Shown: in pieces, positions 1 through 48,340 of the stretch
Layout: every line of letters starts with the position of its first letter
How positions within the stretch are numbered: position 1 is the first letter of the stretch
Source of the DNA: Macrostomum lignano
Lineage: Eukaryota
Reading direction: 5' to 3'
NCBI GenBank assembly: GCA_002269645.1
Contig: NIVC01002468.1
Span: 62,001-126,000 of the forward strand
Length of the DNA: 64,000 nt
Program-made: the position numbers and the translations under genes
The notes under the pieces: model-generated
Databases searched by the model: none
Told to the model about the DNA's origin: nothing
Seen by the model: the letters and a program-made list of their open reading frames with translations, nothing else

Positions 1-321
1 GATAGGATTTTTCGTCATTTATTTCAACCAGTCGGTTTGTCACTTTTTCGGAAATCTACTTCGAGCTTACTTACTTCTATGTACTTACAGTGCTTAATTT
101 GACAGCCCCTTTCGAACATTTTGAAGAGTTTCTCTTTACTACTACCATGCAGTAGTTGATAATGTATATTTTACCAGCTTTCTCGTTTACTAACACACGG
201 AGGATTCGTGCGCTCAGGGGGTAAGGGATATTTAATCAAACACGGAAGCAACGTCACCAGTTATATTACACACAAGAGTACCTCCACAAATGAAATTAAT
301 TCAATTACAGCAGTTCCACTC

Positions 322-335
322 GTTGCCATGGCGAT
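322..335. promoter_or_regulatory. X-box-like (RFX) motif upstream of Cys-loop receptor copy 1
   Basis: GTTGCC-AT-GGCGAT, one mismatch to RYYNYY-WW-RRNRAC, about 150 nt upstream of the ATG. It ends a 28-nt block (302-329) identical to 14174-14201 in otherwise diverged flanks. Confidence 0.5.
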
Positions 336-480
336 TGATTCAGCACTGGTAGACCAGACGCGTTATTGGCTAAACAGCTATCCTATAGGGTCTTTTCCTC
401 AACTCTGCTTTCTATGATGATATAGAGTAGAAAGCAGTAACCAACATTGGCCTCTTACACCGTATCGACACATCGACACA

Positions 481-1770
481 ATGTCCGTACGCGAAATTCT
501 ACTAGTCGCCACAGCGATTATAGCTGCCACTTGTGGCGGCTCAGCTCAAGATAGAGATCTGCAACACGAGCTGCTGCAGTACTTGAAGAACAATATCACC
601 AACTATAGTCCGCTGCTGCGACCCACAATTAACGCCTACAAGCCTACGTACATCACTATGGATACATCCTTGACCCAGCTGGTATCGGTAGACAGTGCCA
701 AGCAAAGCGTCAAGATTGGGGCTTTCGTAATGGCCGGCTGGACCGAGGAGCGTCTGGTCTGGGATCCGGCCAAGTTCGGGAACCTAACCGTGATTAACTG
801 GGACAATTCGAATGTCTGGTTTCCTGTCATCCTCATCTATAATGGCATCGGAGACAACCAGATGCTCACTCCGCAGATGCCAGTGTATCTAAGGTCGATC
901 CAGTCCAACCTTACCAGAGTCATCGCGGGATGGCGTCGAGAGTTCGAATTCTCGTGTGAGTTCGACGTGAGCAAATTCCCCATAGACAGGCACGTCTGCG
1001 AGCTCGAGTTCTTCTTTAGCGACCAGGGCCATGACAACCAAATGCTGATTCCTGTCAAGAACAATTTGACGCCATTTCAAATAGACGGACTTTATCGAAC
1101 TAACAGCGAATGGAAGTTGTTGAATGCGTCGACGTCGTCCGAACGGAAGCCGTACAAACTCGTTCAAGGTGCACCGGATGTGCTTCTACCAACTTATGTG
1201 ATCCGTCTGGAGATCGAGAGAGTCTCCGCCTACTACTTTATGAACATCATCACACCACTGCTACTGCTGACTTTGCTACAAGTGCTGGTATACTTTGTGC
1301 CCCTGGAGTCTGGCGAGAAGCTGGGATTCGGCATCACAATCATGCTCAGCTACACTGTGTTCCTTCTTCTGCTGGACAGCATCGTGCCCAAGTCGCAGAC
1401 AACACCAGCGATCGCTTCGTTCATCACGGCCGCTATGATCTTGTCGACGATATCTCTGCTACTAACGTCGCTAATTATGCGTCTGCACTTCGCTCCGGAG
1501 GGCAATCGGATGCCGGCCTGCATGCGTGCCGTTTTGATTGGCTTCTTGGCTCGAGTGTTCTGCGTTGGCGGTGCTGCCAAAATCAACAAGGTCGAGATCA
1601 AGAAAGGGACTAGCATCGAAAAAAAGAACACTACTGATGAAGAGGACACTCCAGTTGTTCGATCCGATTGGGTGGTTGCTACGCACGCTGTCGAACGACT
1701 CATGGTTGCTATGGGAGTGGCCGCCACTGCAGCTATTATTGGAGTTTTCGTCATCCAACCGTACACCTAA
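481..1770 (+). CDS. Intronless Cys-loop ligand-gated ion channel subunit, divergent nAChR-like, predicted cation-selective (429 aa), copy 1
   Basis: Signal peptide, WxDxxLxW and WxP-x-I-x-x-Y-N motifs, Cys-loop C159-x13-C173 (CEFDVSKFPIDRHVC), four TM helices, GEK motif before M2 (ESGEKLGFGITIMLSYTVFLLL). No vicinal Cys in loop C. Confidence 0.93.
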   Translation: MSVREILLVATAIIAATCGGSAQDRDLQHELLQYLKNNITNYSPLLRPTINAYKPTYITMDTSLTQLVSVDSAKQSVKIGAFVMAGWTEERLVWDPAKFGNLTVINWDNSNVWFPVILIYNGIGDNQMLTPQMPVYLRSIQSNLTRVIAGWRREFEFSCEFDVSKFPIDRHVCELEFFFSDQGHDNQMLIPVKNNLTPFQIDGLYRTNSEWKLLNASTSSERKPYKLVQGAPDVLLPTYVIRLEIERVSAYYFMNIITPLLLLTLLQVLVYFVPLESGEKLGFGITIMLSYTVFLLLLDSIVPKSQTTPAIASFITAAMILSTISLLLTSLIMRLHFAPEGNRMPACMRAVLIGFLARVFCVGGAAKINKVEIKKGTSIEKKNTTDEEDTPVVRSDWVVATHAVERLMVAMGVAATAAIIGVFVIQPYT

Positions 1771-2164
1771 AGACCGCAAGAGATTATACTGAGTCGGCTT
1801 ATGAAACTTTCTGAAAAAAGATTCTTTAATAATAATAAATTCTCTATGCTTCTATCTTCTAATTAAATGAATTAATTCACATCAAAAGTGCATATGTGCT
1901 TCTAGTCTTCTCATTTAATCGAGCGACTTTCAGCATTGTTCTGTTCTACGAGCTATGCTAATTGTATGCCACTCTGTGCCACTAGAGACAACTAGAATCA
2001 GATTATGCAAGCATCTAAAAAACAGCTCTGGTTCTCTACTCACAGCAATTGCTGCCGCAGTAGGCTTGCACCCCAATCCTTCATAAAACGATAGGTTCAT
2101 CAAGGGGATAGCTACTCAATCATGCAGTAAACTAAGAGGCACTTTTCATGATTGCAAATGGTGA

Positions 2165-2178
2165 GTTGTTATGGTAAC
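2165..2178. promoter_or_regulatory. X-box (RFX) motif downstream of Cys-loop receptor copy 1
   Basis: GTTGTT-AT-GGTAAC matches GTHNYY-AT-RRNAAC. Positionally homologous to 16032-16045. Confidence 0.5.
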
Positions 2179-2348
2179 AGTTAATGAATTCTTAGCAAAG
2201 GCTTGGTAAGCACTCGATAAAACTAACTGTGGACAGAGCCTTCAGCGAACAGGCAGGACTATTGTTAATTTAACGAAATCACAAGCTTTTTGGGAAGAAA
2301 GTTTTAGAGAGCGTGTGTTTACTGCCACCAGAAAAAGTTATTTGCAAA

Positions 2349-3288
2349 TAGGGATTCCAAAATCCCGACATTTTACAATCCCGGGATTGAATAGTCCCGA
2401 AATCCCGATGCTGTTGAAATCCCGGGATTCAAAATCCCGGAATCCCGGTGCTTTTGCAATCCCGGGATTAAAAATCCCGGGATTCGATTCCCAAAAAAAT
2501 CCCGGGATTCAAATCCCGGATTTTTGGCCCCAATCCCGGGATCCCGGGATCCCGGGATTGGAATCCCTAAATTGCTAGACGGACTGTGCGGCGTGCCGCG
2601 TGCAGTAGTCATGGTCTCGCGACTCTCAGAGTCTCAGGGCCTTTTCATATTACCAATTCCAGAACCAGAATCGGTTCGGAATTCGAAGAAAAACAGCAGT
2701 ATAACTATTAAACTCTGTTAATATTTGACTGCCTTAACAGCCTCACTTAGCACAATTTTTCACTTTCTTCTTGGCGACTGTCATTCAATAATAAAAACTT
2801 TATAGCACGTATCTCCCTCTAGTTATGGAGACAAAAAGTTTATACTTCACAAATTGGTTCTTGTTCTGGAACCAGAGCAAGCAATATGAAAAGGCCATCA
2901 GTCTCGTCTCGTGGTAGAAAACGAAAAAAAGTTAAAATTATCTATAATTTACAGTTCACATTAACAATTTTTAGCTCAATTAGGACAGGAGCTTTGCAAA
3001 TGTTTAACGTTTCATTGAGAAACAGCAAAAACAAATAAATGTTTTATTATTCAAATAAACGTTTAGACTTTAAATTATCTAATTTAGGCATTGAAAGGTC
3101 GTTCTAATCCCGGACCAATCCCGGGATTAAGGCCTTGAAATCCCGGGATCCCGATCCCGGTCTTTTGCAATCCCGGGATTAAAAATCCCGGGATTCGATT
3201 CCCAAAAAAATCCCGGGATTCAAATCCCGGATTTTTGGCCCCAATCCCGGGATCCCGGGATCCCGGGATCCCGGGATTGGAATCCCTA
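2349..3288. mobile_element. Non-autonomous hAT-type DNA transposon (MITE-like) with ATCCCGGGAT subterminal repeats
   Basis: TIRs TAGGGATTCCA...TGGAATCCCTA, 8-bp TSD TTTGCAAA at 2341-2348 and 3289-3296, many palindromic ATCCCGGGAT motifs. An internal duplicate right end finishes at 2569. Confidence 0.75.
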
Positions 3289-3482
3289 TTTGCAAAGACG
3301 ATTTTTTTCAACAGGTGGAATAAAGGCCCGTTTGAGCTACTGAAACTTGAAAGCGGAACCGGGCATTTTTATTCAGCTCGAGAGGGAGAATCCAAACACG
3401 AATGGAATAAAATATGACGGAAACAACTACAAGTATGTGCATATGGCATATTTCTATATATCTCTCCTCCCCTCCCCTCCCC

Positions 3483-3900
3483 TAATACTAAAACTGACGC
3501 GATGTTTGTCTGTCTGTGTGTTGTAAGTGAACTCCTACAATTCTGGCAAGTCAGCGTCGAAACTTATATGGGAAAACTGCAAATTTTCCGGAGCAGGCTT
3601 TAGGCTATTTTAATTTTCACATTTTAACATCCCTAAAAAAGCAGAAAACTGCTTTTCAGCCACCAATAACCTTCTTTGGCCACTCTGACTGGGGCTGCAG
3701 CCAGTTTGTAAAAAAAGCCACCCCAACCTCCGCCCGCGGGTCACTGTGTATTGAGGGGTGGTGGGTGCGCGTGTTCTGCGTTCAATGCAAATAAAACCCC
3801 CCGCATGTTGGGGGGTTGAGGTCAAGTTAATGCTTCCCCCAGAACGGGGGTTGGGCTTGGGTTGAGTGTACATAGCAGTTGTACAGTGTAAACAGATAGA
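3483..3900 (+). mobile_element. Probable non-autonomous Helitron/Helentron-like element fragment
   Basis: 5' ctaatactaaaa followed by a GTCT microsatellite. Shares blocks CAGCCACCCCAACCTCCGCCCGC and GTACATAGC...TGTACAGTGT with 6772-7540. Family call by general resemblance only; ends approximate. Confidence 0.4.
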
Positions 3901-4442
3901 TATAGACTGTGTCGAGATTCATTTGGTTTTATTATTGGCGCCTTTTTTCCATAGGCAGCCCTGTGTATTAGTTTGGCAGTGAAATTCAATGAATAAACTT
4001 GCGAGCTTCTCTATCTCTAGCAAGCAGTCGGGAAATCGGTAAATTTCAAACGCTAACTGTTCCTCGAGTTTTAAACTTTGAGAGGAGACACTTATATTGC
4101 TGGAAAGATCTTGCAACGCTGAGTTCGGGGATAAAAGTTGTTTGCTTTATATATGAAAAGAAAAAGCACCGCATTTAAAAAACTATTTCCATACTTTTTT
4201 AACTTTCTGCAAAAAATTGTACTCAGTTTTGCGAGACGTAATAGATAAAGTTGGGGGAGGGTTCAACTTCTCACTGCTGCTGTGTATTGGAGGGTTGATT
4301 TAGATTGCGCAATTGCGCAATGTTTTTGTTAACTTTAACTGAGACTGATACTGACTGACTGTGAAATCGGTTGCGCAATGAATTGATTCAATTATTTCAA
4401 TATTTTTATCAGTTGTCTTTTAACACGAAGCTGTGCGTAGTT

Positions 4443-4466
4443 CTAACCCTAACCCTAACCCTAACC
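4443..4466. repeat. Short interstitial telomere-type repeat (CTAACC)4
   Basis: ctaaccctaaccctaaccctaacc read directly; complement of TTAGGG. Confidence 0.8.
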
Positions 4467-4549
4467 AATGAATCCGGAGAGTTGAGTTGTTTGACGGAAA
4501 AAATTCGATTGAGTCCAGTTTAGTGGAGACGATTTCAATGTTTAAAATT

Positions 4550-5570
4550 TGACGAAGAGGATTTCTTTTTCGTGGAGAGGATTTCGATGGTGTTCAGTTT
4601 CACGGAGAGGATTTCGATGATGTTCAGCTTCACGGAGAGGATTTCGATGATGTTCAGCTTCACGGAGAGGATTTCGATGATGTTCAGCTTCACGGAGAGG
4701 ATTTCTGTTTCGTGGAGAGGATTTCGATGGTGTTCAGTTTCACGGAGAGGATTTCGATGATGTTCAGCTTCACGGAGAGGATTTCGATGATGTTCAGCTT
4801 CACGGAGAGGATTTCGATGATGTTCAGCTTCACGGAGAGGATTTCTGTTTCGTGGAGAGGATTTCGATGGTGTTCAGTTTCGTGGAAAGGATTTCGATGA
4901 TGTTCAGTTTCACGGAGAGGATTTCGATGATGTTCAGCTTCACGGAGAGGATTTCTGTTTCGTGGAGAGGATTTCGATGGTGTTCAGTTTCGTGGAAAGG
5001 ATTTCGATGATGTTCAGTTTCACGGAGAGGATTTCGATGATGTTCAGCTTCACGGAGAGGATTTCTGTTTCGTGGAGAGGATTTCGATGGTGTTCAGTTT
5101 CACGGAGAGGATTTCGATGATGTTCAGCTTCACGGAGAGGATTTCGATGATGTTCAGCTTCACGGAGAGGATTTCGATGATGTTCAGCTTCACGGAGAGG
5201 ATTTCTGTTTCGTGGAGAGGATTTCGATGGTGTTCAGTTTCGTGGAAAGGATTTCGATGATTTTCAGTTTCACGGAGAGGATTTCGATGATGTTCAGCTT
5301 CACGGAGAGGATTTCTGTTTCGTGGAGAGGATTTCGATGGTGTTCAGTTTCGTGGAAAGGATTTCGATGATGTTCAGTTTCACGGAGAGGATTTCGATGA
5401 TGTTCAGCTTCACGGAGAGGATTTCTGTTTCGCGGAGATAATTTATGATTTATTTCTGCTTTATGGAGACGATTTTGATGGATTTAAGTTTCACGGAGAG
5501 GATTTCGAAGAAGTCCAGTTTCACGGAGAGGATTTCTGCTTCGCGGAGAGGATCTTGATGGATTTGGCAT
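4550..5570. repeat. 30-bp minisatellite with a 20-bp variant and 140-bp higher-order units
   Basis: Unit CACGGAGAGGATTTCGATGATGTTCAGCTT. The 4x30+20 = 140-bp period is seen between 4572 and 4712. Degenerate copies at both edges. Confidence 0.95.
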
Positions 5571-5580
5571 CTTCAATCAG

Positions 5581-6660
5581 TCAGAGAAGAGAGTAAAGAG
5601 AAGAATGAAAAGAGAAGAGAGATGAGATGATAGAAAACAGAGTAGAAATGAGTGGAGAGATTAGACATGACAGATGGGAGAGAAGAGGGGAGTAAGGCGG
5701 GAACGAAGGAGAGAGAAGAGAAGAGGAGAGAGGAGATGAAGGGAGAGGAAATGAGAGAGGAGATATGAGATAGCAGAGAGGAGACAGGAGAGAGAAGAAA
5801 AGAGGGATAAGAGCGTACAGAGGCAATAGAAGAGAGGAAAGAGAGGAGAGAGGTGAGAGGAGAGAGATGAAAGATCAGAGATCAGAGATTTAAGAGAAGA
5901 AAGTAGTGAGGAGAAAGAAGAGGGTAAAGATGAGAGTGCAGAGAGGAGAGAAACGAGAGGAGACAGGTGGTAGAAAGGAGTGTAAAAAACAGGAGATAAG
6001 AAAGGAGAGGGTGAGAGTGAGAGCATATAGGAAAGTGTAAAAGGGGAGCAGAGGAGAGAGAATAGATAAGTGAGTAGAGAAGAGATATGAGGGAGGAGAG
6101 ATTCGAGATTAGAGAAGAGATGAGGGGAGATGAGAGGAGAGAAGAGAGAATGGAGAGGAGAGAAAAGAGAGGAGAGGAGACAGGTGATGCAGTAGAAAGG
6201 AGGGAAGAAAGATGGTAGATAAGAAAGGAGAGGGTGAGAGCGTATAAGAGATACGAGAAATGAGAGCAGAGAGAAGAGAGAAAAGGGAAGAGAGAAAGTA
6301 GAGCGGAGACGATAGATAAGTGAGTAGAGATGAGATATGAGAGAGGAGAGAAAAGGGGAGAGATAAGAGAGAAGATAGGAGAGTAGACAGGAGAGGGTAC
6401 AGACGAAAGACGAGGGAGAAGAGATAAATAAGGGAGTAGAGATGAGAAAAGAGACAGAAGAGATAAGCGAGAATAGTAGGAATAGAGGAGAGAGAGAAGC
6501 GAGAGAAGGGAGAGAGTAGGGAGAAGAGAGATGAAAGATCAGAGATGAGAGAGATGAAAGTGTAGAGAGGAGTAATTAGTGAGGAGAAAGAAGAGAGTAA
6601 AAATAAAAATCAGAGCGCAGGGCGCAAGAGATGAGAGATGGGAGTTGATAGATTGTAGAG
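5581..6660. repeat. Purine-rich (GA) low-complexity tract
   Basis: Plus strand is almost entirely G/A. The Leu/Ser-rich minus-strand ORFs are a by-product. Confidence 0.9.
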
Positions 6661-6771
6661 GATTTGGAAGATGGGATTCAATTCATGGAATTTCAGCTGA
6701 TAGGAGTTCTTCCCCTTCAGAATTCCGGTGATGGGAGTTCTTCCGCTTTCTTCTCCAGAGAAGGAGTTCCA

Positions 6772-7540
6772 CTCGTCTACATTTTAAAATCAAAACTCTG
6801 TCTGTCTGTGTGTGTCTGTCTGTCTGTCTGTGGACAATTTTGTTCGCTATAGACTCCCAAACCACCCGACCAAATGACACCAAATTTTGCACCCACCCTA
6901 AACTCACTACGGAGAATGTCTTAGGCTATCTTTAAATTTCCTAAATTTGAGTCTTCATACCTAAAATTGCAAAAAACTGCTCAAAATGCGCGATTTTTCC
7001 ACTAAATCCTTCATAGCGCCGCGCCACTTCTACCGATGTTCTTCAAATTTGACACAATCAATCTTCAACTATTTTGACACAATCATGTAAAATTTTAAGT
7101 CTCAAAGTTAATCTTAAACGGCGCTGTGCACTTTTAAAGTTAGGCTGTTTTTTTTCAGCGAGGCAGCCACCCCAACCTCCGCCCGCCTGCCTCTCCCGAT
7201 CCGGGCAAAGGGTGTAAATAGGTTTTAAAATGACTAACTTTCGGCTGCCATAACTTTGCTCAACGTGAGGCGATTGGCTTCAAATTTGACACAATACTTT
7301 ATTAACTCATTCTCTGTCTGAATGTAAAGTCTCAACTCCGTATCTTAATCAGGACAGAAACTAAAAGCATGTGAATTTTGTCTGCTTTTTCTGTTGTTTA
7401 TGCCGCTCACTCACTCATTCCCCCAGTCCAGACGAAGGGTCAGGCGATAGGGCTCAATGTACATAGCGAATGTACAGTGTTTTGGAATAACTTTTCAATA
7501 GCCTTCTGCCGCAACCCGCGCGTGGAGAGGCTACGTTTAG
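6772..7540 (+). mobile_element. Probable non-autonomous Helitron/Helentron-like element
   Basis: Begins TCTAC..., then a (GTCT/GT)n microsatellite and a ccgaccaaatgacaccaaattt block, with a GC-rich hairpin near 7500-7535. Shares motifs with 3483-3900. Ends approximate. Confidence 0.45.
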
Positions 7541-7984
7541 CCTTGACAGTTTAGCGAGAGATTCAAACCAGTGTCCTCTGTATAGACAAGTCTGCAGCAG
7601 TTTAACAGTGGATGGCAAATCAAGGCGATGTGGGATGGTTTGTAAAAATAGCGAAAAATTAATAACTGATTAGTAGTGATTACAATGCAATCCTACTAAA
7701 TTAGTTACACCATGAAAATTTTAACATTAAGATTCGCATAAGGTACTTTAAAATTTAAATGGCTCCTAAGAAATACGTATTTCCTTGGTTGCTAGACTGC
7801 TGCAGACTGTGGTGGTGGAGCTGGGCTGGAGGGAGATACACAAATTCCTCTCAGGGCTGCTAATTGGCCAGAAATATGATGTGATTAAAGCATAACAACC
7901 ATGAGAGTACTACGCCCCACAAACGCTTTCGAAGCGGGGATTGGCAGACTTTAACCTCAAATGCCAGATAAAGAACCAAGCTCA

Positions 7985-10480
7985 TGGCTGATGAGATGAG
8001 AGTGAAAAGGAGAAGGAATAGACTATAAGAAGAGAGGAGAAGCGAGAGGAGGATAAGAGAAAAGATAGAAGACAAGAAGAGAGACGATGGGGTAAGGATA
8101 AGGAGTGAGCAGATAATATTGGAGTAAGAAGCGAGAGGAGGGGAGAGAGAAGGGAGAGGAAAGAGTAGAAGTGAGAAGAGGGAGAGAGAAGATGGGAGAG
8201 ATGAGACAGGATCGATGACAGAGGAGAGCAGAGAAGAGTGAGAAGAGAGTAGAGATGAGAGATGAAGGAGGAGAGAGCAGAGTGCAGAAAGGCGAGAGAA
8301 GAGAATAGAGGGGAGAGAGTATAGAAGAGAGAAGAGAAGAGGAGTAAGGAAAGAGAGGAATCAGAAGAGGGTAAAGAGAAGAGTACACTGAAGATTGGAG
8401 AGTACAGATGACAGAAAAGAGAGGGGATGAAAGTGAACACGATATCTGAGAGGAGAGAGGAGAGCGGAGATAGGAGTCAGATGAGGGGAAAGAGAAGAGT
8501 ACAGAGGAGAGAGGTGAGAACGTACGAGTATACGAGAGTAAGGATGACAGATGAGAGAGGGAAGATGAGACTGAGAGAGCAAAGACGAGAGTGAACACAC
8601 GAGAGATGGTAGAGTAGAGAGAAAAGAGGATAGATAAGAAATGAGAGATGAGAGATGAAAGGTGAGACAAAGGGAGAGAGAGAAGTGAGTGAGGAGAGAG
8701 GAGGGGAAGGGAGAGAATCGAGAGGACAGGGGAAAGAGGGGAAAGGATGAGAGAGAGATGAGAGAGGGGAGAGGAGAGAGGGAGAGATAGAGGTAGAGAG
8801 CATGCAGAGAGAAATGAGAAGAGATAAGAGAGAAAAGATAAAAGAAGAGAAAGGAGAGATAGATAAGAGAGCAAAGACGAGAGAGGAGAGGTGGGGGAAG
8901 AGACGATAGAAGAGAGGAGAGGAGAAAGACGAGAGAGTACAGAGTACAGAGGAGGGAGGAGAGGAGAAAGGAGAGAGAAGTGTTCGGAGAGGGTAGAGTA
9001 AGGAGTGAGAAGAGGGGAGAGGGAGGAGAGGAGAGGAGAGAGGAGAGTAGAGAGCAGAGGGAAGATAGAGTAGAGAGCAGAGAGAAGATGGAGTAGAGAG
9101 CAGAGGGAAGATAGAGTAGAGAGCAGAGAGAAGATAGAGTGGAGAGCAGAGGGAAGATAGAGTAGAGAGCAGAGAGAAGATAGAATAGAGAGCAGAGGGA
9201 AGATAGAGTAGAGAGCAGAGGGAAGATAGAGTAGAGAGCAGAGAGAAGATGGAGTAGAGAGCAGAGGGAAGATAGAGTAGAGAGCAGAGAGAAGATAGAA
9301 TAGAGAGCAGAGGGAAGATAGAGTAGAGAGCAGAGGGAAGATAGAGTAGAGAGCAGAGAGAAGATGGAGTAGAGAGCAGAGGGAAGATAGAGTAGAGAGC
9401 AGAGGGAAGATAGAGTAGAGAGCAGAGAGAAGATAGAGTGGAGAGCAGAGAGAAGATAGAGTAGAGAGCAGAGAGAAGATAGAGTGGAGAGCAGAGAGAA
9501 GATAGTAGAGAGCAGAGAGAAGATAGAGTAGAGAGCAGAGAAAAGATAGAGTAGAGAGCAGAGAGAAGATAGAGTGGAGATCAGAGAGAAGATAGTAGAG
9601 AGCAGAGAGAAGATAGAGTAGAGAGCAGAGAGAAGATAGTAGAGAGCAGAGAGAAGATAGAGTAGAGAGCAGAGAAAAGATAGAGTAGAGAGCAGAGAGA
9701 AGATAGAATAGAGAGCAGAGGGAAGATAGAGTAGAGAGCAGAGGGAAGATAGAGTAGAGAGCAGAGAGAAGATGGAGTAGAGAGCAGAGGGAAGATAGAG
9801 TAGAGAGCAGAGAGAAGATAGAGTGGAGAGCAGAGAGAAGATGGAGTAGAGAGCAGAGAGAAGATAGTAGAGAGCAGAGAGAAGATAGAGTAGAGAGCAG
9901 AGAGAAGATAGTAGAGAGCAGAGAGAAGATAGAGTAGAGAGCAGAGAGAAGATAGAGTAGAGAGCAGAGAGAAGATAGAGTAGAGAGCAGAGAGAAGATA
10001 GAGTAGAGAGCAGAGAGAAGATAGAGTAGAGAGCAGAGAGAAGATAGAGTAGAGAGCAGAGAGAAGATAGAGTAGAGAGCAGAGAGAAGATAGAGTAGAG
10101 AGCAGAGAGAAGATAGAATAGAGAGCAGAGGGAAGATAGAATAGAGAGCAGAGGGAGGATAGTAGAGAGCAGAGAGAAGATAGTAGAGAGCAGAGAGAAG
10201 AGAGAGTAGAGAGCAGAGGGAAGAGAGAGTAGAGAGCAGAGAGAAGATAGAGTAGAGAGCAGAGAGAAGAGAGAGTAGAGAGCAGAGAGAAATGGGAAGA
10301 GATAAAACAGGAGAAAGGGAGATAAGAGAGCAGAGACAAGAGAGGAGAGGAGAGGAGAGAAAAGAATAAGAGGGAATAGACGCGAGAAGAGGGGATAGAG
10401 GAGAGAGAGAAGAGACCACAGACCAGAGAGAAGAAAGAAAACAGAAGAGAAGGTAGAGATAGAAGTTTCTAAGGATCCAA
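7985..10480. repeat. GA-rich tract containing a 23-bp minisatellite (about 9045-10290)
   Basis: Unit AGAGCAGAGAGAAGATAGAGTAG with 21-bp variants; about 55 copies embedded in degenerate GA sequence. Confidence 0.95.
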
Positions 10481-13400
10481 CTTCCAAGGGACACAAGGAG
10501 AGGCAGAGGCCATGAGTTTGCCTGACATTCTGCGCAGCACCCTAACCAAAAATATTAATGTTTGCTTCAAATACTAATTTTACATGAATGTACTCTATTT
10601 TATGTTTAACTCTATCCTAAATTCCTAACTATTAAAAAGTTTTTGTTTAAGTATGACTTCAGATTTTAGAATACTTTCAAAAATAGTTCTAGGGATTGGA
10701 GTTCCCCGGGTTCAAAATCCGCGGGTTTCAACAGCTTGTCGATATATAATAGACACAACCACAGATCCTAAATCTTAGTCAATTAATCAGGCTTCGCAAA
10801 AGAACATAACTAAACACAGGATTGCTTTGGTTTAAATTTTTACATGTAAAAACTATCAATTGATGCGACTATTTATAATATCTTACGAAAACCAACGCAA
10901 GTGTCAATGACCTTTCATTTTGCAATACTTGGAGGGATGGACACTTAAACAGGCTCGTCAAGTTAAAAGATGACTATTTGGACTGCTCTGAAACAAATAA
11001 ATAGGACCAGAATATTTTTATTTTGGCAGAAAATTAAAGCTGTTTTCCGGGTAAGCAATTCTCTAAAAAGGTTTCGAGAAACAAGGCATCTAGGCCTTAT
11101 CTATTCTTTTTCACGATCCCTGGTTTGGTTCCTGTTAGGAGACGTGGGAAAGCCGGAAGGGCCTCCTTGCGAGTTGTGCGGGTGGTGCTGCACTCAGAGG
11201 TCTTGTGAGATGGCGCCAGGTTGCAGCTCTCCAGCCGGTTGTGGAGACCGCCTTGCTGTAATTGTACTGAGCTATAATTGTCACTTTTGGATGCACTCTG
11301 TCAAAATGGATGCACATATGCAAGTTTTGTTCAATAGACAGTGAGACAAAGGCACTGTCTTGTAACCCAGTGTCAAAACTGAATGCACACTGTCAAATGT
11401 ACTAGCAAATTGTGAATAAAGGTTGGAGTTTGTCTTTTTCGGTTGAAAATCGGCATTATTGCATTTGAGTTTGTCAAAATAGATTGAAAATTTCAACAAG
11501 CGATACAACAGACTGTCAAAATTGAATGCAAAGATATCAATACTGAGTGCAGATTTTCCAAAAATAGAAAGTAAAAAGGTGTAGCTAAAACTCGGTCTTG
11601 TTGTTTCTGTGAAACACTCTATTCGTGAGCTACTTCCTAAGTTGAATCTTAGGTTCAAATTTTGCTGTGTGAAGCGCCCCCAGCTGGGAGTTGGAAGTCT
11701 TTCCCTACTGGGAGAAAATATTAAGCGGCAAATCACATGACTATAGGTGTTGTGGCTCTGGCTTGTGCCCCTCAGATAAAAATCCGGCTTATGCCACTGA
11801 CATCTGGCTGCTGTGGGCTAGACCAAGGTAGCTAATATGCAAATTTTTGTAAGAATAATAAAAAATTTTCTACCTTCCGTCTATATCTGTATGAAACATT
11901 CTGTTGGGGCGCTAAGTTGACAATATTTACTCATCTCATGCGCGACATGCCAATTGAAAATAGAGCTAGTATTTGTTTGGTCTGAAGTTAAATTATTTGG
12001 TTGGATTATTGCCGACTAGACCAAGTTAATTGACTTTTTTCTTCTTCAGAAGTGCTCCTCGGAGGGTAAGAAAACAGATTGAGGCCTCTAAAAAGTTGAG
12101 ATGTTTGACGCGACGCAGGTGTTAGGGTTTCAAATCTCTGGCCTCTTACGATCTCCGGTGCCTTACGTTCTCCTGTAGGTATAATTAAAAGTCAAGGGAT
12201 TTTTTATAAAGGGATTAAAGTTGATAAGAAATTGGTAGCCTTTGAGATCGTCACACGTGTGCTATGTACGCAGTGCTTACTTGTCAAATGAGTATACGCA
12301 TAATAATACTAATAGCTCAGCACTATACAGTTCACCACATGCCTTGGCTGCTTCATTATGGCCAGTATTTTATACCTGTTCACTGTTCAGCATGATCTTC
12401 CGTCCAAAGAAAATGACAAATTGAAGCGTCGAATTAGAGAAAAAGGCACGAGTTTTGCTCTTCACAATGTAGCGGAATGTACCAGCTATAGTTAAAAATA
12501 TTGCAAGCAGCAAGAGACGGTGATCAAAAGAGGTGAAAAAAGTTGTTTGCATCGAGGATAAGGCCAAGAAGCTTGTCGAAAGGGTTCACATGGAGTCCTG
12601 TCAATTCGGTCTAAAAGCCTCGTCAAAATCAGATGTTACAGTAATGTAGCCGTCACTCCGATTGCCAGGCATAGGCATGTACGCAGAACTTACATATTGT
12701 TGGGTTGCTGTTCAATTCCCAGTGCATACTTGCGGCTGTGCACACCGGATGTACACTGCAGGTGACAGACTATCGATCTTAATCGTACCTGAAAGTCATG
12801 TAGCACTACGTAGATGTACATACATGACAATTCCTTTCTATCCAGGTGCAAAGAAACGGCCAAAATCAACGGCTTAACCAAAATTGCCTGAGTTTGCTGC
12901 TCAAAGTTTGTGATTCATATAGTCGTGACTGCATGGGATTTAAAGCGAAATGCCATCTAACTCGTCTACGACACTCCACCACAGGCACTTCACCCTTTCT
13001 GTATGCCGTATCTCTCTGTCTTCTCTTGCGCCTTGTTTGAATTTCAGGCATTAATGCCGACAGAATTTGTATATTTGCATATAAGAAGCGCCCTACTTCA
13101 TCAATTTTAGGGCGGCCTTTGGATTCAATCAATTGGGAGATGAGGCTGCCAATTTCTTAACTCGCCCGACTGCCGTGCGAACTACTACGAACAGACGCCA
13201 GTTGGCTAAAAAAGCAACGCATCGAGCAGAGACAAAAAAGCTGATCGCCCAGAATATTTGGACTTTGCAAGAGAAGGAAACCGAGTCAGACTTAAAAAGT
13301 CTCAACGCGATGACCGACCGCAAAGGCGGAAAATTCCAAATGGCTTGGAATGCGCGCAGATAAAAAATGTAACACGAGCGTAAAAGATGTCTCAGTCTGA

Positions 13401-14193
13401 ATGTACTAGCTGACTGCTCTTAAAGGGTGCGTCAATGGACAGCAATCGAAACGCTGCTTCAATTTTGTTAGCCGAAGTGGACCGATTAATTAATTACCAA
13501 TGTTTGATCTTAGTATAAACTATCTGTTTTACTAAGTAACGAATAGATATTTGTCAGCAAGTGAGACGGTTTCAGTAACTATTCCATTTTCTTTAGATGA
13601 GTAAAATGTACACTACTTTTTTCTAATACAGTGGTCTGATTCAGTGAACAGCCTTGGAACTATTGTGAAAGAGAAATAATTTTGATGCCTGCACTTTGGG
13701 TCTTTAAAGGACGTGTGATCACAGACACAGCGGGACCGCAGACAAGAAGCCGGAAATCCTAAAGCAAACCTTAGTTTTTTATTAGCTCGGAGATCCTAAG
13801 CTGATTTGCGATTCCCGGGTCGAATGGTGGCTGCCTCGCAACCTCCGAGGTAGACTAATCAGAAACTGTCCCGGAAACTGCAAAGCAGCTACTGTTCTCC
13901 GAAGCGGAGATTGTAAAGCACTTGTAGTCTCCAGAAGAAACCCCTAAGGCCAGCCAGGAGACTGTACAGTCACTTCACATCATTTTGACGAGTTACAAAT
14001 TCCTACTACCAGTAGTTACATGGATGTGTGTTTGATCAGCTTTATTTTACCAGCATTTTATTAACGCGAGGACCAGTGCACCCCGAGGGAATGGAATAGT
14101 TAGCCAAACACGGAAGCAATATTGGCAGTTATGACGAGCATATACTTCCTAACTTCCACAAACGAGATTCATCCAATTACAGCAGTTCCACTC

Positions 14194-14207
14194 GTTGCCA
14201 TAGCGAC
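14194..14207. promoter_or_regulatory. X-box (RFX) motif upstream of Cys-loop receptor copy 2
   Basis: GTTGCC-AT-AGCGAC fits RYYNYY-WW-RRNRAC, about 155 nt upstream of the ATG. Confidence 0.55.
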
Positions 14208-14359
14208 GGCTTCAACAATGGTAGGTGAGACGCATTACTGTTTAACAGCTATGCTTATGGTGCTTTGCGTCAGCTCTGCTTTCTATTTAATTCTGCCGTA
14301 AAGTAGAAAGCAGTAACTAACACAGTAACCAAAATTGGCTTCTTACACATATCGACACA

Positions 14360-15667
14360 ATGTCCGTACGCGGAATTCTACTAGCCGCCACAGCAATTTT
14401 AGCTGCAACTTGTGGCGGCTCAGCTCAGCATAGAGATCTGCAACACGAGCTGCTGCAGTACTTGAAGAACAATATCACCAACTATAGTCCGCTGCTGCGA
14501 CCCACAATTAACGCCTACAAGCCTACGTACATCACTATGGATACATCATTGACACAGCTGGTATCGGTAGACAGTGCCAAGCAAAGCGTCAAGATTGGCG
14601 CCGTTTTAATGGCCGGCTGGACTGAGGAGCGTCTGGTCTGGGATCCGGCCAAGTTTGGGAACCTAACCGTGATCAACTGGGACAATTCGAATGTCTGGTT
14701 TCCTGTCATCCTCATCTATAATGGCATCGGAGACAACCAGATGCTCACTCCGCAGATGCCAGTGTATTTGATGTCGATCCAGCCCAACCTTACCAAAGTC
14801 GTCGCCGGGTGGCGTCGAGAGTTCGAATTCTCGTGTGAGTTCGACGTGAGCAAATTCCCCATAGACAGGCACGTCTGCGAGCTCGAGTTCTTCTTTAGCG
14901 ACCAAGGCCATAACAACCAGATGCTGATTCCTTTCAAGAACAATATGAAGCCATTCCAAATAGATGGACTTTATCGAACTAACAGCGAATGGAAGTTGTT
15001 GAATGCGTCGACGTCGTCCGAACGGAAGCCGTACAAACTCGTTCAAGGTGCACCGGATGTGCTTCTACCAACTTATGTGATCCGTCTGGAGATCGAGAGA
15101 GTCTCCGCCTACTACTTTATGAACATCATCACACCACTGCTACTGCTGACTTTGCTACAAGTGCTGGTATACTTTGTGCCCCTGGAGTCTGGCGAGAAGC
15201 TGGGATTCGGCATCACAATCATGCTCAGCTACACTGTGTTCCTTCTTCTGCTGGACAGCATCGTGCCCAAGTCGCAGACAACACCAGCGATCGCTTCGTT
15301 CATCACGGCCGCTATGACCTTGTCGACGATATCTCTGCTACTAACGTCGCTAATTATGCGTCTGCACTTCGCTCCGGAGGGCAATCGGATGTCGGCCTGC
15401 ATGCGTGCCGTTCTGATTGGCTTCTTGGCTCGAGTGTTCTGCGTTGGCGGCGCTGCCAAAATCCATAAGGTCGACGGAGCAGAGGACGTCGAGATCAAGA
15501 ATGAGACTAGCATCGACAAAAAGAATGCTACTGACGAAGAGGACACTCCGGTTGTTCGATCCGATTGGGTGGTTGCTGCGCACGCTGTCGAACGACTCAT
15601 GGTTGCTATGGGAGTGGCCGCGACCGCTGCTATTATTGGAGTTTTCGTTATCCAACCGTACACTTAA
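14360..15667 (+). CDS. Intronless Cys-loop ligand-gated ion channel subunit, divergent nAChR-like (435 aa), copy 2
   Basis: Paralog of 481-1770 with the same Cys-loop, GEK and M1-M4. Net 6 aa longer in the M3-M4 loop. Homology extends into about 0.4 kb of 5' and 0.55 kb of 3' flank. Confidence 0.93.
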   Translation: MSVRGILLAATAILAATCGGSAQHRDLQHELLQYLKNNITNYSPLLRPTINAYKPTYITMDTSLTQLVSVDSAKQSVKIGAVLMAGWTEERLVWDPAKFGNLTVINWDNSNVWFPVILIYNGIGDNQMLTPQMPVYLMSIQPNLTKVVAGWRREFEFSCEFDVSKFPIDRHVCELEFFFSDQGHNNQMLIPFKNNMKPFQIDGLYRTNSEWKLLNASTSSERKPYKLVQGAPDVLLPTYVIRLEIERVSAYYFMNIITPLLLLTLLQVLVYFVPLESGEKLGFGITIMLSYTVFLLLLDSIVPKSQTTPAIASFITAAMTLSTISLLLTSLIMRLHFAPEGNRMSACMRAVLIGFLARVFCVGGAAKIHKVDGAEDVEIKNETSIDKKNATDEEDTPVVRSDWVVAAHAVERLMVAMGVAATAAIIGVFVIQPYT

Positions 15668-16031
15668 TGACAGCTCGAGATTAGCCTGATGGGGCTTATG
15701 AAACTTACTAAAAATTGATTCCTAAATATTTATCAACCCTCTATTATTTTCTCTTCTAACTACGAGCTAAATCCGATAAAGTGTTTTGCATCAAAAAGTG
15801 CACGGGTGCCTCTAGTTGTCTCTAGTGGCAATTACGAGCTTAGAACAAGAACAATGCGAAATGTCGGCTAAACTAATTATCAAGCTGAATAAGTGCGAGC
15901 ATCTATAAAGAATGGCTCTTGCTTTCTTGTTGCACTGCCAATTCCCAACGAAATGAGTTTCAGAGGAAATGACCGGATTCGTCCCTCCATCATTCAATCA
16001 ACTAAGCTTCAGTTTGCACCATTGCAAATGA

Positions 16032-16045
16032 GTTGCCATGGTAAC
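16032..16045. promoter_or_regulatory. X-box (RFX) motif downstream of Cys-loop receptor copy 2
   Basis: GTTGCC-AT-GGTAAC, a near-palindromic textbook X-box. Confidence 0.6.
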
Positions 16046-16792
16046 CAAATTTTGGCAAAGACTCGGTAAACACTCAATAGAACTGTGGGCAGAGCTTTCA
16101 GCTAACCATGCAGCAGGGCTATTGTTAATTAAATAAAATCACGAGCGAGCCTTTTGGGGACAGAGCTGCAGAGGGCGTGTGTTTGCAATGAAAACAGAAC
16201 TTGGCTGGAATATGGACACGGCAGCCTGGGAACCTGCTGGACACCTGCCAGTATATGCTATATATGAATTGTTAAATATTTACCTCAACACTCCGTGTTA
16301 TATTTTCTCTCCTAAACCTTACTAGCAAAGAAAATTGTTAGCATAGAAAACATTTTCTACAGTTAAAACAAAGGCCTGTTTTTAGACATGTCATAGACAG
16401 CTATTGCATATCAGCATATTCGGCCATAAATCGATAGACACAATCGAGTTTATTGATCAAGCAAGCACTGTCAAAACACAACACAAAAATGCCTGCGCAC
16501 ACATGATTGCTTTGTTAAAATAAGGTATAATTGCCGAGCTAAGAGTAGAGAAACGGAACACTGTATGATTGGAAGGAATGTTCGATTTAAGATGTTTTAT
16601 AGTTAGATCGAGCTAGAATACTTTAGAATTTGATCTGCATTTCAATCAAATACACACTTGCAATCGCTATATTCTTATAGTGTTCCAGTGCGCCAACCAA
16701 TGTCATACGGTTAGTGTCGCAGCGTCCTTGGTATTGAAACTAGAATCGAACTGAACTGAAAGTTTTACTCTATATCGGGAGAAGCTCCCAGA

Positions 16793-19459
16793 TCACAGAT
16801 TCGGGGTTGCTACGCCGACAGCTTTCAAAGAATCCTCCAGCGCTGCCAGAACCCGTTCGGCCACGGCCTCCGTGGCGTTGAGGCCCATCAGGCCGATGCG
16901 CCACACCTGGCCTGCGGTGGGGCCGAGACCGCCAGCGATCTCTACGGAGTGTCTGGCGGTTGGCAGGTGCGGGATAATCGTAGTGATTTATTACTTTAAT
17001 AATGAGACACCCAGATCGGTGATAGAGGCTCAGGTCATCAAAATATATCAATCAAATATAGCAACTGAGGATCTGGGAGGCTGGCCCAGCAACTGAGGAT
17101 CTGGGAGGCTGGCCCAGCAACTGAGGATCTGTGAGGTAGGCCCAGCAACTGACACTCTGGGAGGCTTGCCCAGCAACTGAGGATCTGGAAGGTTGGCCCA
17201 GCAACTGACACTCTGGGAGGCTGATGGCCCAGCAACTGAGGATCTGGGAGGCTGGTGACCCAGAAACTGAGGATCTGGGAGGCTGGTGACCCAGAAACTG
17301 AGGATCTGGGAGGCTGGTGACCCAGAAACTGAGGATCTGGGAGGCTGGTGACCCAGAAACTGAGGATCTGGGAGGCTGGCCCAGCAACTGACACTCTGGG
17401 AGGCTGGTGGCCCAGCAACTGAGGATCTGGGAGGCTGGCCTAGCAACTGAGAATCTGGGAGGCTGGCACAGCAACTGAGAATCTGGGAGGCTGGCCTAGC
17501 AACTGAGAATCTGGGAGGCTGGTACAGCAGCTGGGGATCTGAGAGCCTGGCCTAGCAACTGGGGATCTGGGAGGCTGGCAACAACAACTGGGGATGTAAA
17601 AAGGCGGCGCTACTATACACAAACTAAAGAAAGCGCTCACTTGGCCATCGCGTGCTGAACAACAGCCTTCCAATCAACGCCCTCCGGCACAGCTATTGTG
17701 GTAACGGTTGGCGCCCGGTCCTGCGGTTCCGACACGAACAGCCGCTGCCCGAGGCGACCTTGGAGTCCGGCGCGTAGCTTGTCAGCGGCGCGCTCGTGTC
17801 GCTCCCACGCGGCTGGCAGGCCCTCGACGGCCACTAAGCGTAGCGCTTCGCGGGCGGCGTACACCAGACTGATCGGCGCCGTGTGGTGGTAGCGCCTGGC
17901 CGACACGGGCTGGTCAGGCGGCTCTGTGGTGCGGCAGCCCCAGTAGTTTGCCAGCTGGCTCGCGTCCAGGTAGAACGAAGGCGGCGGCACCTTGCGGCTG
18001 AGGATCTGTGGTTGAAGCCATTTAAGTTATACGGATGGTTGCTTAACTGATAACAAGTCTCAGAGTCTTAATCACATCGTTGTGTCCCAACGCCTTCCTA
18101 ATGTCTTACTGTCCTAATGCTTGAGAGTCCTAATGCCTTTGTGTCCCAATGCCTTAGTATCCCAATGCCTGAGTGTCCTAATGTCTGTGTTTCCTAGTCT
18201 TAGTGTCCTAATGTCTTTGTGTCCCAATGCCATACGAGTAGTATCCCAATGCCTGAGTGTCCTAATGTCTTTGTGTCACAATGCCTTAGTATTCCAATGC
18301 CTAAGTGTCCTAATGTCTTTGTGTCCCAATGCCTTAGTATCCCAATGCCTGAGTGTCCTAATGTATTTGTGTCACAATGCCTTAGTATTCCAATGCCTGA
18401 GTGTCCTAATGTCTGTTTCCTTAGTCTCAGTGTTCCAATGCATTAGTATTCCAATGCCTGAGTGTCCTAATGTCTTAACTGCCTTTAATCATAATGTCTT
18501 AGTGTCCTAATGCCATAGCATATCTTAGTGTCTTAGCGCCTTAGGTTGCCATTATCTTAACGTATTAACTTATTAGTGACTTAATGTTCTAATGTTCTAG
18601 TGACTACTTAGTTACTACTTACTGCTTACCGTTAAGGCAAAAAAACCACAAATCGCCTCGAAGTCAATATCGAAAACCCAAATCAAAGTAACTTGCATTG
18701 TCATTAGTGTCTTATGCTGTTCTGTTTTAGCACTTTACTATATATTAACGTATGGCTCCGTAATGCTATATTGTGTAAATAGCATAGTGTGCGAATCGAA
18801 TAGAGTTTCAATTCCATCATGTCGTAATGTCCAAATGTCTCGATGCTTTAGTGCTCTCATGCCATATAGTATCAATTTCACAACTATATTGATTGGGCTA
18901 ATATTCAATAGTGTCTTATGGCATCATGGCTTAGTTATAGTGTCTATTGAGAATAGTCAATATTCTTTTTGCTTAATGTCTAAGTGTCTGAATTTCTAAC
19001 CTTCCTCCTAGCAGCCTCCGAGAAAGAGATTAGCCCCAGGCCGGGCGTGCAGCCCAAGCACTTCTGACTGCCGGTGTACACGCAGTCGATCAGCCAATCG
19101 TCAGTGAGCAGCGGAGCTCCTCCGGCAGCGGCAACGGAGTCTACAAGCAGCAGGGCGCCATGCTTGCGGCAGACGCCGCCCAGGTGTTCGAGAGGCTGCA
19201 GCGTGCCGGTGCTGCTTTCTCCGTGAACAACGAAGACAACGCTGGGCCTGTGCTGCTGAAGGGCCGACTCCAGCTGCTCGGGGGTGAACACGCTGCCAGG
19301 AGGCTGCGACAGCAGGACAGGTTTCAGCGACAGGCGGCGGGACAGTTCAGCGAACCTGTCGCCCCAGATGCCGTTGCGACAGACTAAGACGGTTTCACCT
19401 GGCTCCAGGAGGTTCATGCAGGCCGCCTCCATGGCGCAGTGGCCTGGGTAGAAACCGGG

Positions 19460-35700: not shown

Positions 35701-37104
35701 CCAACGTCATGGATGAAGGAATAGAATGGATTGCTAATCTAGCCAACGTCATGGATGAAGGAATAGAATGGATTGCCAATCTAGCCAACGTCATGGATGA
35801 AGGCATAGAATGGATTGCAAATCTAGCCAACGTCATGGATGAAGGAACAGAATGGATTGCTAATCTAGCCAGCATCATGGATAAAGGCATAGAATGGATT
35901 GCTAATCTAGCCAACGTCATGGATGAAGGCATATAATGGATTGCTAATCTAGCCAACACCATAGATGAAGGCATAGAATGGATTGCTAATCTAGCCAACA
36001 TCATGGATAAAGGCATAGAATGGATTGCTAATCTAGCCAACGTCATGGATGAAGGAATAGAATGGATTGCTAATCTAGACAACATCATGGATGAAGGAAT
36101 AGAATGGATTGCGAATCTAGCCAACGTCATGGATGAAGGCATAGAATGGATTGCAAATCTAGCCAACGTCATGGATGAAGGAACAGAATGGATTGCTAAT
36201 CTAGCCAACGTCATGGATGAAGGAATAGAATGGATTGCCAATCTAGCCAACGTCATGGATGAAGGCATAGAATGGATTGCAAATCTAGCCAACGTCATGG
36301 ATGAAGGAACAGAATGGATTGCTAATCTAGCCAGCATCATGGATAAAGGCATAGAATGGATTGCTAATCTAGCCAACGTCATGGATGAAGGCATATAATG
36401 GATTGCTAATCTAGCCAACACCATAGATGAAGGCATAGAATGGATTGCTAATCTAGCCAACATCATGGATAAAGGCATAGAATGGATTGCTAATCTAGCC
36501 AACGTCATGGATGAAGGAATAGAATGGATTGCTAATCTAGACAACATCATGGATGAAGGAATAGAATGGATTGCTAATCTAGCCAACATCATGGATAAAG
36601 GCATAGAATGGATTGCTAATCTAGCCAGCATCATGGTCGTCAATGACTCACCTGCAATCTGTGCTTAATATCCATGAAGATATTCTGATTCCAAGCCTTC
36701 AACATGATTTTAGTGACATAGCGACTCTCTTTAGCCGACTTTTTAGACGGTCCAGTGTGCATCTTGACACCTAAAGTGCTTTCCACTTGGCTAAACGGCT
36801 TAGGCAGGTACTCGCATAGAGTGAAGAACTTCTTCCATTCAACTATGTAGGCCTTCAAAAGGGCGCTATCTTCTTGGTGCTGCATAACTCGCCTCTCAGC
36901 ATCTTTAACATAGCCAGTGATAACCTCATCTAAAGCAGTGATAAGCTTCTGTGGGCCGCTCTCGTCCCAGACGCTGATATTGTGCACAGCAGCAAACAGG
37001 TCGTGCCATTCTGCTTTGCTAACATTCTGCTGATAAAGCAACTTCTGAAGTGTGCCATGAACTGCTGGCCACTTGCTTTCAAACGATGTGTCAGCTTTTT
37101 GCAT
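29751..37104 (-). CDS. CUL5: Cullin-5, 6 coding exons, 774 aa
   Basis: Exons 37104-36652, 35618-35280, 35027-34551, 33698-32962, 32156-32033 and 29945-29751 (2325 nt), all GT-AG with compatible phases. CUL5-type motifs LLKAYIVEWKKFF, LANYCDMLLRKTPLSK and VLKYVQNKDVFMKYHKAHLTRRLIL; neddylation site IVTIMKSRK. Confidence 0.96.
29965..31790. repeat. 30-bp minisatellite in CUL5 intron 5
   Basis: Unit GTGTGATTTGTGAAGCTGTAGTGAATGCCT, about 60 copies with recurring variants. Confidence 0.96.
32660..32945. repeat. C-rich 24-bp repeat (72-bp trimer) in CUL5 intron 4
   Basis: Unit CCAACCAACCCTACCTCCCCTAGC; TAGCCC recurs at 32705, 32777 and 32849. Confidence 0.88.
33728..34465. repeat. 22-bp minisatellite in CUL5 intron 3
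   Basis: Unit GTGTCAGACGGAGCTAATGAAA. Confidence 0.93.
35078..35240. repeat. 21-bp minisatellite in CUL5 intron 2
   Basis: Unit GAATCTGCCTCAATGCTAATT, about 7 copies. Confidence 0.88.
35678..36635. repeat. 42-bp minisatellite in CUL5 intron 1
   Basis: Unit GAATGGATTGCTAATCTAGCCAACGTCATGGATGAAGGAATA, about 23 copies. Confidence 0.95.
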
Positions 37105-48264: not shown

Positions 48265-48340
48265 TTAACCACCAAAAAAATTACGCTGGAACTCTTTTTT
48301 AAATTCTACCGCAGTGTGCAGTCTCTCTCAGGCCTTAACA

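Follow-up and report, generated by a model that had tools for sequence, protein, structure and literature searches.

The stretch of DNA analysed here, a 64-kb window of contig NIVC01002468.1 (positions 62,001 to 126,000), carries two closely similar intronless genes, W1 and W2, that encode channel subunits of the nicotinic acetylcholine receptor (nAChR) type. W1 and W2 are paralogs that probably encode functional channel subunits, members of a small and hitherto undescribed subfamily of intronless, tandemly arranged nicotinic-type channels of the Macrostomum lineage, whose remodelled pocket would serve a ligand other than acetylcholine (ACh). Orphan intronless tandem nAChR-like genes of spiralians are a known kind already. 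Catalogues of such channels exist for molluscs and annelids, their function has been worked out in cephalopods only, and what is added here is their extension to flatworms. The family is presented as a candidate for a possible flatworm-specific channel class, not as a discovery.

Channel scaffold and acetylcholine site

W1 and W2 are 94% identical in protein sequence, with a single indel of 6 amino acids in the cytoplasmic loop between M3 and M4, and their coding sequences (CDS) are 96% identical in nucleotides. A tblastn search found no third copy or fragment of them in the window. Both belong to the nicotinic/cationic branch of the Cys-loop receptor superfamily. The Pfam domains Neur_chan_LBD (1e-27 for W1, 2e-28 for W2) and Neur_chan_memb (4e-20 and 6e-20, respectively) are recognised in each protein, and the closest solved relative of W1 found with HMMER is the human alpha7 nAChR (8e-42, about 25% identity). 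An AlphaFold model of W1, for which an alignment of 46 sequences was the input, reaches a pLDDT of 87.3 and a pTM of 0.77. It shows a beta-sandwich ectodomain (strands beta1 to beta10) followed by the helices M1 to M4. When this model was compared with solved chains using Foldseek, the matches were alpha4beta2, alpha3beta4 and alpha7 receptors, with TM-scores up to 0.89. The Cys-loop, C159-EFDVSKFPIDRHV-C173, has 13 residues between its cysteines and carries the FPxD motif; none of the 46 aligned sequences deviates at the two cysteines, at P167 or at D169. The Arg preceding M1 and the Pro of the M2-M3 linker are both present in W1 and W2.

The original prediction, made from the DNA letters, had described an intact GEK/M2 cation pore and a very short M3-M4 loop, and both descriptions hold. 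M2 reads ESGEKLGFGITIMLSYTVFLLLLD in all six family members, with GEK, Glu at -1', Leu at 9' and no Pro-Ala-Arg, a signature that predicts cation selectivity for W1 and W2. In the AlphaFold model, M3 runs to residue 336 and the M4 helix begins at residue 396, and the segment between them, of about 60 residues, is short for an nAChR.

The residues of the ACh site were assigned by an HMMER alignment to alpha7 and by a MAFFT alignment in which the six family proteins stand beside alpha7 and 147 relatives (154 sequences). The prediction held that only the loop A Tyr and the first loop C Tyr remain of the canonical site, and these are indeed retained (Y120 and Y225). The losses that it listed were also recovered. 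The loop B Trp (Trp149) is Ser180 in the window genes, and S, I, A or N across the family. The vicinal cysteines of loop C are replaced by Leu-Val in W1 and W2 and by L or I followed by I or F in the M. lignano paralogs (L/I and V/I/F for the family as a whole). At the second loop C Tyr, the MAFFT alignment places Leu236 and the HMMER alignment an Ala, non-aromatic either way; family-wide, the MAFFT-based pocket table gives L or I at this equivalent of Y195. The loop D Trp (Trp55) is Phe82 in W1, Val82 in W2 and I, L, Y or F in the paralogs, while 99 of the 148 non-family sequences of the alignment keep it. The hallmarks of the cation-pi box for ACh are therefore all replaced, on the principal and on the complementary face, mostly by aliphatic residues. 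The pocket residues W86, Y93, Y188 and Y168 (alpha7 numbering of the pocket table) are retained in the family. We infer that ACh is probably no longer the agonist of W1 and W2.

Two further changes concern the surroundings of this box. Loop C was said to be longer and hydrophobic, and its hairpin does measure 24 to 26 residues, about 4 residues longer, and is aliphatic; in the 147 relatives, the loop C/beta10 hairpin has a median length of 21 residues and a 90th percentile of 22. In addition, a family-invariant W151-R-R-E-F-E-F motif on strand beta6 replaces the P-P-[A/G]-I-F-K-S found in most relatives, the positions of W151 and R152 being P/P in most of the 147. This motif would bring a Trp and two Arg near the complementary face, which may hint at an anionic or zwitterionic moiety of the ligand.

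Vertebrate alpha7 (and also alpha4 and alpha3) is thereby the known system that matches best in both sequence and fold. It shares with the flatworm family the Cys-loop FPxD, GEK, the 9' Leu, the loop A Tyr, the first loop C Tyr and the four transmembrane helices. In contrast, the family is without the loop B Trp, the Cys pair, the second loop C Tyr and the loop D Trp, its loop C hairpin is 4 residues longer, P-P-G-I of beta6 has become W-R-R-E, the M3-M4 segment has shrunk to the length given above and the CDS is intronless.

Family members, phylogeny and pattern of change

The W1 and W2 proteins themselves have no entry in public protein collections. When 1.84 billion cluster representatives were scanned exhaustively with HMMER, the only close relatives were M. 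lignano or unlabelled MetaClust proteins, namely PAA92206.1 (61% identity), P0002 (47%) and the fragments P0124 and P0134, all other matches having at most about 32% identity. A family-profile search of 5.8 billion clusters at E <= 1e-30 returned the same four proteins only. The family is small, with four public proteins and two unannotated genes from searches of 1.8 and 5.8 billion sequences. The next-best per-domain matches are “alpha-10-like” genes of corals, Nematostella, starfish, amphioxus, chiton, clam and annelids. As far as public data show, the family is lineage-restricted, being found so far only in Macrostomum-type free-living flatworms. A literature search on this family, on Mlig033226 and on flatworm X-boxes returned nothing relevant.

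The cluster member P0273 led to a second array of such genes, in a 21-kb locus of M. lignano (NIVC01000059.1), in which tblastn and a listing of open reading frames (ORFs) revealed two intact intronless paralogs on either side of the annotated gene PAA92206.1, together with a C-terminal fragment (Table 1). All genes of this array lie on the same strand, and one of the three intact paralogs is annotated. The intronless and tandem state is common to the window pair and to the M. lignano array. About five to six paralog types are known, which are 44-60% identical to one another. A more distant single-ORF Cys-loop receptor gene, P0003 (25% identity), was noticed on a 9.7-kb metagenome contig (ENA ERZ27296354; L001, positions 1652-3004), and it, too, lacks the Trp of loops B and D as well as the Cys pair.

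A bootstrapped neighbour-joining (NJ) tree was built from alpha7, all six proteins of the family and 147 relatives trimmed to their domains, a set that contains no sequence of the cephalopod chemotactile receptors (CRs). The family is monophyletic in 100 of 100 bootstrap replicates, and no internal branch of the tree is longer than the one that leads to it (0.68). Its nearest sister is weakly placed, a Lingula “beta-3-like” gene with 32% support. The NJ tree shows no molluscan or cephalopod sister of the family among the 147 relatives, CR sequences not being among them, and neither CR nor Alpo4 chains occur among the best 60 PDB sequence matches or the best 50 fold matches. Since the clade is monophyletic without a cephalopod or molluscan sister, its origin appears independent of the octopus chemotactile receptors. 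Furthermore, the family does not fall within a conserved non-alpha nAChR clade, a placement that the original prediction had named as fatal to its chemoreceptor hypothesis; this hypothesis therefore survives, as one of several. Within the family, W1 and W2 group with the paralog MligB, at just 58% bootstrap support, and the W1/W2 duplication would thus be younger than the paralog types.

Between W1 and W2, dS is 0.105 and dN is 0.023, i.e. a dN/dS of 0.22 overall, and purifying selection thus acts on the pair. The ectodomain scaffold (142 codons) shows 0 replacements for 6 synonymous changes (dS of 0.07), and M1-M3 (91 codons) shows 1 replacement and no synonymous change. The binding loops A-F display 10 replacements and 10 synonymous changes (omega of 0.26, dS of 0.21). 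For the cytoplasmic loop and M4, omega is 0.28 and 0.06, respectively, with a dS of about 0.2 in both. All 10 replacements in the mature ectodomain are located in loops A-F (binomial P = 5e-5), 9 of them falling in D, E or F, the loops of the complementary face (P = 9e-6). No positive selection was detected between W1 and W2, as omega stays under 1 wherever synonymous differences occur; the older paralogs are too saturated for selection tests.

Across the paralog types, identity is 74-87% in M1-M3, 43-61% in the scaffold and 27-52% in the loops. Loop B is identical at 10 of 11 positions between W1 and MligB, for a scaffold identity of 61%, and is unrelated in the other paralog types. This conservation suggests that the pocket of each paralog type is under a constraint of its own, and it argues against simple decay. 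The flanks of W1 and W2 are only 66-74% identical and dS is uneven along the genes, which points to an older duplication, after which patchy gene conversion would have homogenised the scaffold and the pore.

Possible functions of the family

In the functional reading that we favour, the subunits would assemble as homo- or heteropentamers and conduct cations. ACh would not be the gate; another small molecule would bind the remodelled pocket between subunits, with separate tuning for each paralog type. W1 and W2 would represent an older duplicate in which gene conversion keeps the scaffold and the pore alike, and as they differ almost only in loops D, E and F, they may form two slightly different pockets or interfaces. 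The ligand could come from within the animal, as a transmitter or metabolite, or from outside, as a cue.

Several considerations weigh against this reading. Quaternary amines are still bound by some receptors with altered boxes. Synonymous and non-synonymous differences between W1 and W2 both concentrate in the loops (dS of 0.21 against 0.07 in the scaffold), and patchy gene conversion, instead of selection on the pocket, may account for this concentration. A subunit that binds no ligand could also have variable loops because the constraint on them is relaxed.

The original prediction went further and saw in these genes a candidate chemoreceptor family. What stands of it is an intact, selected, stripped-site, intronless and tandem clade that is restricted to one lineage; the small size of the family, the lack of positive selection and an X-box that is not conserved speak against it. 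It seems unlikely to us that W1 and W2 are chemosensory receptors of ciliated sensory neurons that detect environmental, probably hydrophobic molecules in parallel to the cephalopod CRs. The likeness is real, as genes that are intronless, tandem and lineage-restricted, with an aliphatic pocket instead of the ACh box, show the traits listed for CRs (PMC11526382), and the differences between the mature ectodomains of W1 and W2 are confined to the pocket loops. However, two genes in the window and about five to six types in M. lignano make a small family beside the 26 CRs of octopus and the 6 of squid (PMC11526382), and an omega of 0.26 in the loops gives no sign of diversifying selection. The invariant Arg-Arg-Glu beside the pocket would also be unexpected for a purely hydrophobic site. 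Moreover, a stripped ACh site as such is not very unusual: 22 of the 147 nearest relatives (15%), among them genes of a brachiopod, a nemertean, a snail and a tardigrade, have likewise lost both the loop B and the loop D Trp along with the Cys pair.

The X-box-like motifs were the other argument for sensing. In the window, 6 strand-hits of the X-box were observed vs. 0.32 expected. The upstream sites (at 322 and 14194) lie about 150 bp 5' of each ATG, at the end of the sole strongly conserved 5' island, which is the longest exact run (28 nt) in an otherwise 66%-identical flank (shuffle P = 0.0006). The sites matching the strict consensus (at 2165 and 16032) lie about 400 bp 3' of each stop codon, within 200-bp blocks located about 350-550 bp 3' of the stop. 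Because the W1 and W2 loci are duplicates, these represent two independent sites and not four. An origin of the X-box flanks as copies of a dispersed repeat was considered and rejected: within the window, they match only each other. The sites invoked by the original prediction therefore exist, but no X-box with up to 3 mismatches was found in the whole 21-kb M. lignano array, where the upstream motifs shared with the window genes amount to scattered 8-mers and single RFX half-sites, at about chance level. In addition, RFX targets include motile-cilia genes and the flatworm epidermis is multiciliated, so that RFX sites do not single out sensory cilia and equally fit motile-cilia or non-ciliary expression. 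The X-box motif is a lead only, and not evidence of sensory expression.

It is rather improbable that the family forms a flatworm-specific set of sensory channels under RFX control in ciliated sensory neurons, with each paralog type detecting a different environmental or conspecific cue through its aliphatic walls and the Trp-Arg-Arg-Glu motif. If the sensory reading were true, it would be a second case, convergent with the cephalopod CRs, of a neurotransmitter-gated channel turned chemoreceptor. The claim of a parallel recruitment, separate from that of cephalopods, applies in this event only, and it agrees with the separate clade (100/100) and with the absence of CRs from the best matches.

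Other nicotinic-type channels with unusual ligands offer partial parallels. In nematodes, DEG-3/DES-2 and the betaine receptor ACR-23 are nicotinic-clade channels with non-ACh agonists or sensory sites. Like the flatworm family they belong to the nicotinic clade, and they have been re-tuned to other small molecules; structures of them exist in the PDB, but they show no specific sequence affinity to the family and are absent among the best 60 PDB matches for W1. The cephalopod CRs derive from nAChRs and their genes lack introns; hydrophobic molecules gate them, and diversifying selection acts on sites of their pocket (PMC11526382). The work on CRT1 and CRB1 (van Giesen 2020, Allard 2023, Kang 2023) is taken here as summarised in PMC11526382 and PMC10338036. 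Going by sequence and literature descriptions, CRs resemble the flatworm genes in being derived from nAChRs, intronless and arranged in lineage-specific clusters, with the ACh signature lost in favour of a more hydrophobic pocket. The flatworm family differs by its apparently independent origin and its smaller size, and no diversifying selection was detected between W1 and W2.

Five bivalves have 99-217 nAChR genes each, many of them intronless and in tandem, with diverse ligand-binding domains, in a survey that included no flatworm (Jiao et al. 2019, PMC6896357). These mollusc and annelid expansions share with W1 and W2 the intronless CDS, the tandem arrangement, the clustering of paralogs by lineage and a divergent ligand-binding domain. 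In contrast, the flatworm family has a handful of members, and no retroposition hallmarks are left: neither a poly(A) remnant nor a target-site duplication is recognisable at W1 and W2. Alpo4 of Alvinella pompejana is an orphan nAChR-like receptor that is not activated by ACh or serotonin and has been linked to the cephalopod CRs (De Gieter et al. 2023, PMC10338036). Like the flatworm genes, this lophotrochozoan nAChR-like subunit is isolated, evolves fast and has no Cys pair in loop C. Nevertheless, Alpo4 retains its aromatic cage (F103, W159, Y199, Y205 and W65), most of which is gone from the flatworm family.

A role as accessory structural subunits, occupying non-binding positions in heteropentamers with a canonical flatworm alpha subunit as vertebrate beta1, beta3 and alpha5 do, also appears doubtful. 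Such a role would account for the loss of key aromatics from both binding faces, for a pore and gating machinery that are extremely conserved beside loops that vary between paralogs, and for the automatic annotation of similarly stripped relatives as “beta-3-like” or “beta-like”. On the other hand, a non-binding subunit would hardly be expected to keep loop B at 10 of 11 positions between W1 and MligB despite a scaffold identity of 61%, to hold its loops under purifying selection (omega of 0.26) or to retain W86, Y93, Y188 and Y168 while acquiring an invariant W-R-R-E. It would also be unusual for one tandem array to hold several divergent accessory subunits that have no orthologs beyond the lineage.

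Decaying retrocopies or annotation noise, i.e. non-functional ORFs, are effectively excluded: intronless copies of intron-bearing families often die, intron-poor molluscan nAChR genes are more often silent or lowly expressed than intron-rich ones (PMC6896357) and the M. lignano array does contain one C-terminal fragment, but five full-length open frames over the window and the array, a dN/dS of 0.22 with 0 replacements in 142 scaffold codons, an invariant M2 and a confident structural model are not those of dying genes.

W1, W2 and their relatives form a compact and tractable clade, with about six paralog types, a frozen pore, a stripped ACh box and the W-R-R-E motif, in the laboratory model genus Macrostomum. 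De-orphanising the family would show whether loss of the aromatic box generally predicts a shift to non-cholinergic or sensory ligands.

Duplicated unit and neighbouring genes

The coordinates of the features are collected in Table 1. The duplicated unit extends beyond the two CDS on both sides, as delimited by blastn and MAFFT.

Table 1. Features of the W1/W2 region and of the related M. lignano array. Positions are those of the window, except for the array, where they are those of the 21-kb locus L003 (NIVC01000059.1).
Feature	Position	Strand	Description
Gene W1 (copy 1)	481..1770	+	Single-exon CDS, 429 aa, uninterrupted ORF; Pfam ligand-binding and transmembrane domains
Gene W2 (copy 2)	14360..15667	+	Single-exon CDS, 435 aa, uninterrupted ORF; 6-aa insertion in the M3-M4 loop relative to W1
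W-R-R-E-F-E-F motif	~931-951 and ~14810-14830	+	Residues W151-F157; beta6, adjoins loop E
Duplicated 5' flank of W1	117..480	+	Promoter/5' untranslated region (UTR) candidate; ~66-70% identity to 13981-14359 (blastn, MAFFT)
Duplicated 5' flank of W2	13981..14359	+	Counterpart of the W1 flank (blastn, MAFFT)
Conserved island, W1 5' flank	302..335	+	CAATTACAGCAGTTCCACTCGTTGCCAT; ends in the X-box-like 14-mer GTTGCCATGGCGAT (322-335)
Conserved island, W2 5' flank	14174..14207	+	Contains GTTGCCATAGCGAC (14194-14207); reverse strand fits the strict X-box consensus
Hairpin upstream of W1	405..437	+	45-75 nt upstream of the ATG; 11-bp stem CTGCTTTCTAT/AGTAGAAAGCAG; fold z = -3.0
Hairpin upstream of W2	14276..14313	+	45-75 nt upstream of the ATG; 13-bp stem, different loop; fold z = -3.9
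Duplicated 3' flank of W1	1771..1865	+	3'UTR candidate with AATAAA; 74% identity to 15668-15762
Duplicated 3' flank of W2	15668..15762	+	Counterpart of 1771-1865
Downstream non-coding block after W1	2115..2320	+	71% identity to 15985-16184; strict X-box GTTGTTATGGTAAC (2165-2178) at centre
Downstream non-coding block after W2	15985..16184	+	Near-perfect palindromic X-box GTTGCCATGGTAAC (16032-16045)
Cullin-5	31703-37104	-	Several ORF blocks; best exon 70% identity, to oyster
M. lignano array, paralog	L003 7863..9188		441 aa, intact, intronless, unannotated
M. lignano array, annotated gene (PAA92206.1)	L003 10001..11305		Middle of array; 434 aa, 1305 nt, no intron
M. lignano array, paralog	L003 12783..14105		440 aa, intact, intronless, unannotated
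M. lignano array, C-terminal fragment	L003 16333..16674		Unannotated

The stems of the hairpins upstream of the two ATGs are the same in W1 and W2, and their loops vary in sequence and length. These hairpins could be 5'UTR structures or palindromic protein-binding sites. No counterpart was seen 5' of the ortholog in the M. lignano array, and an Rfam search of the window gave no matches. As for the downstream 200-bp blocks, they may act as an enhancer or as the promoter of a downstream transcript that has escaped recognition, or they may belong to the duplicated unit. A further strict X-box match (GTCGTCATAGCAAC, 22733-22746) lies inside the coding ORF of HPF1 and is probably due to chance.

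W1 and W2 had been described as single-exon genes amid intron-bearing ones. This is established for their CDS, introns in their UTRs being possible. Among the neighbours, which are split into several exons, cullin-5 is spread over several ORF blocks, and the class-V aminotransferase and HPF1 are each seen as ORFs with part of a domain. The neighbours comprise cullin-5 (Table 1), a class-V aminotransferase fragment (18980-19432, minus strand), the C-terminal part of HPF1 (22616-23080, minus strand) and two ORFs with fibronectin type II domains (56264-57810, plus strand). Part of an ORF at 48314-48763 recalls the RNase H region of non-LTR retrotransposons; the ORF has no Pfam match at E <= 0.001.

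The window is also rich in repeats. Between W1 and W2, at about 8000-10500, a strongly strand-asymmetric low-complexity minisatellite of more than 2 kb (GC skew of 0.81, AT skew of 0.68) yields long spurious ORFs rich in Ser and Leu on the minus strand. Other minisatellite arrays are located at 17.0-17.5, 20.7-21.7, 23.5-24.3, 30.1-31.8, 35.6-36.6, 39.2-39.7, 49.0-49.5 and 59.4-60.4 kb; several of them lie within cullin-5 introns and give rise to repetitive pseudo-ORFs in several frames.

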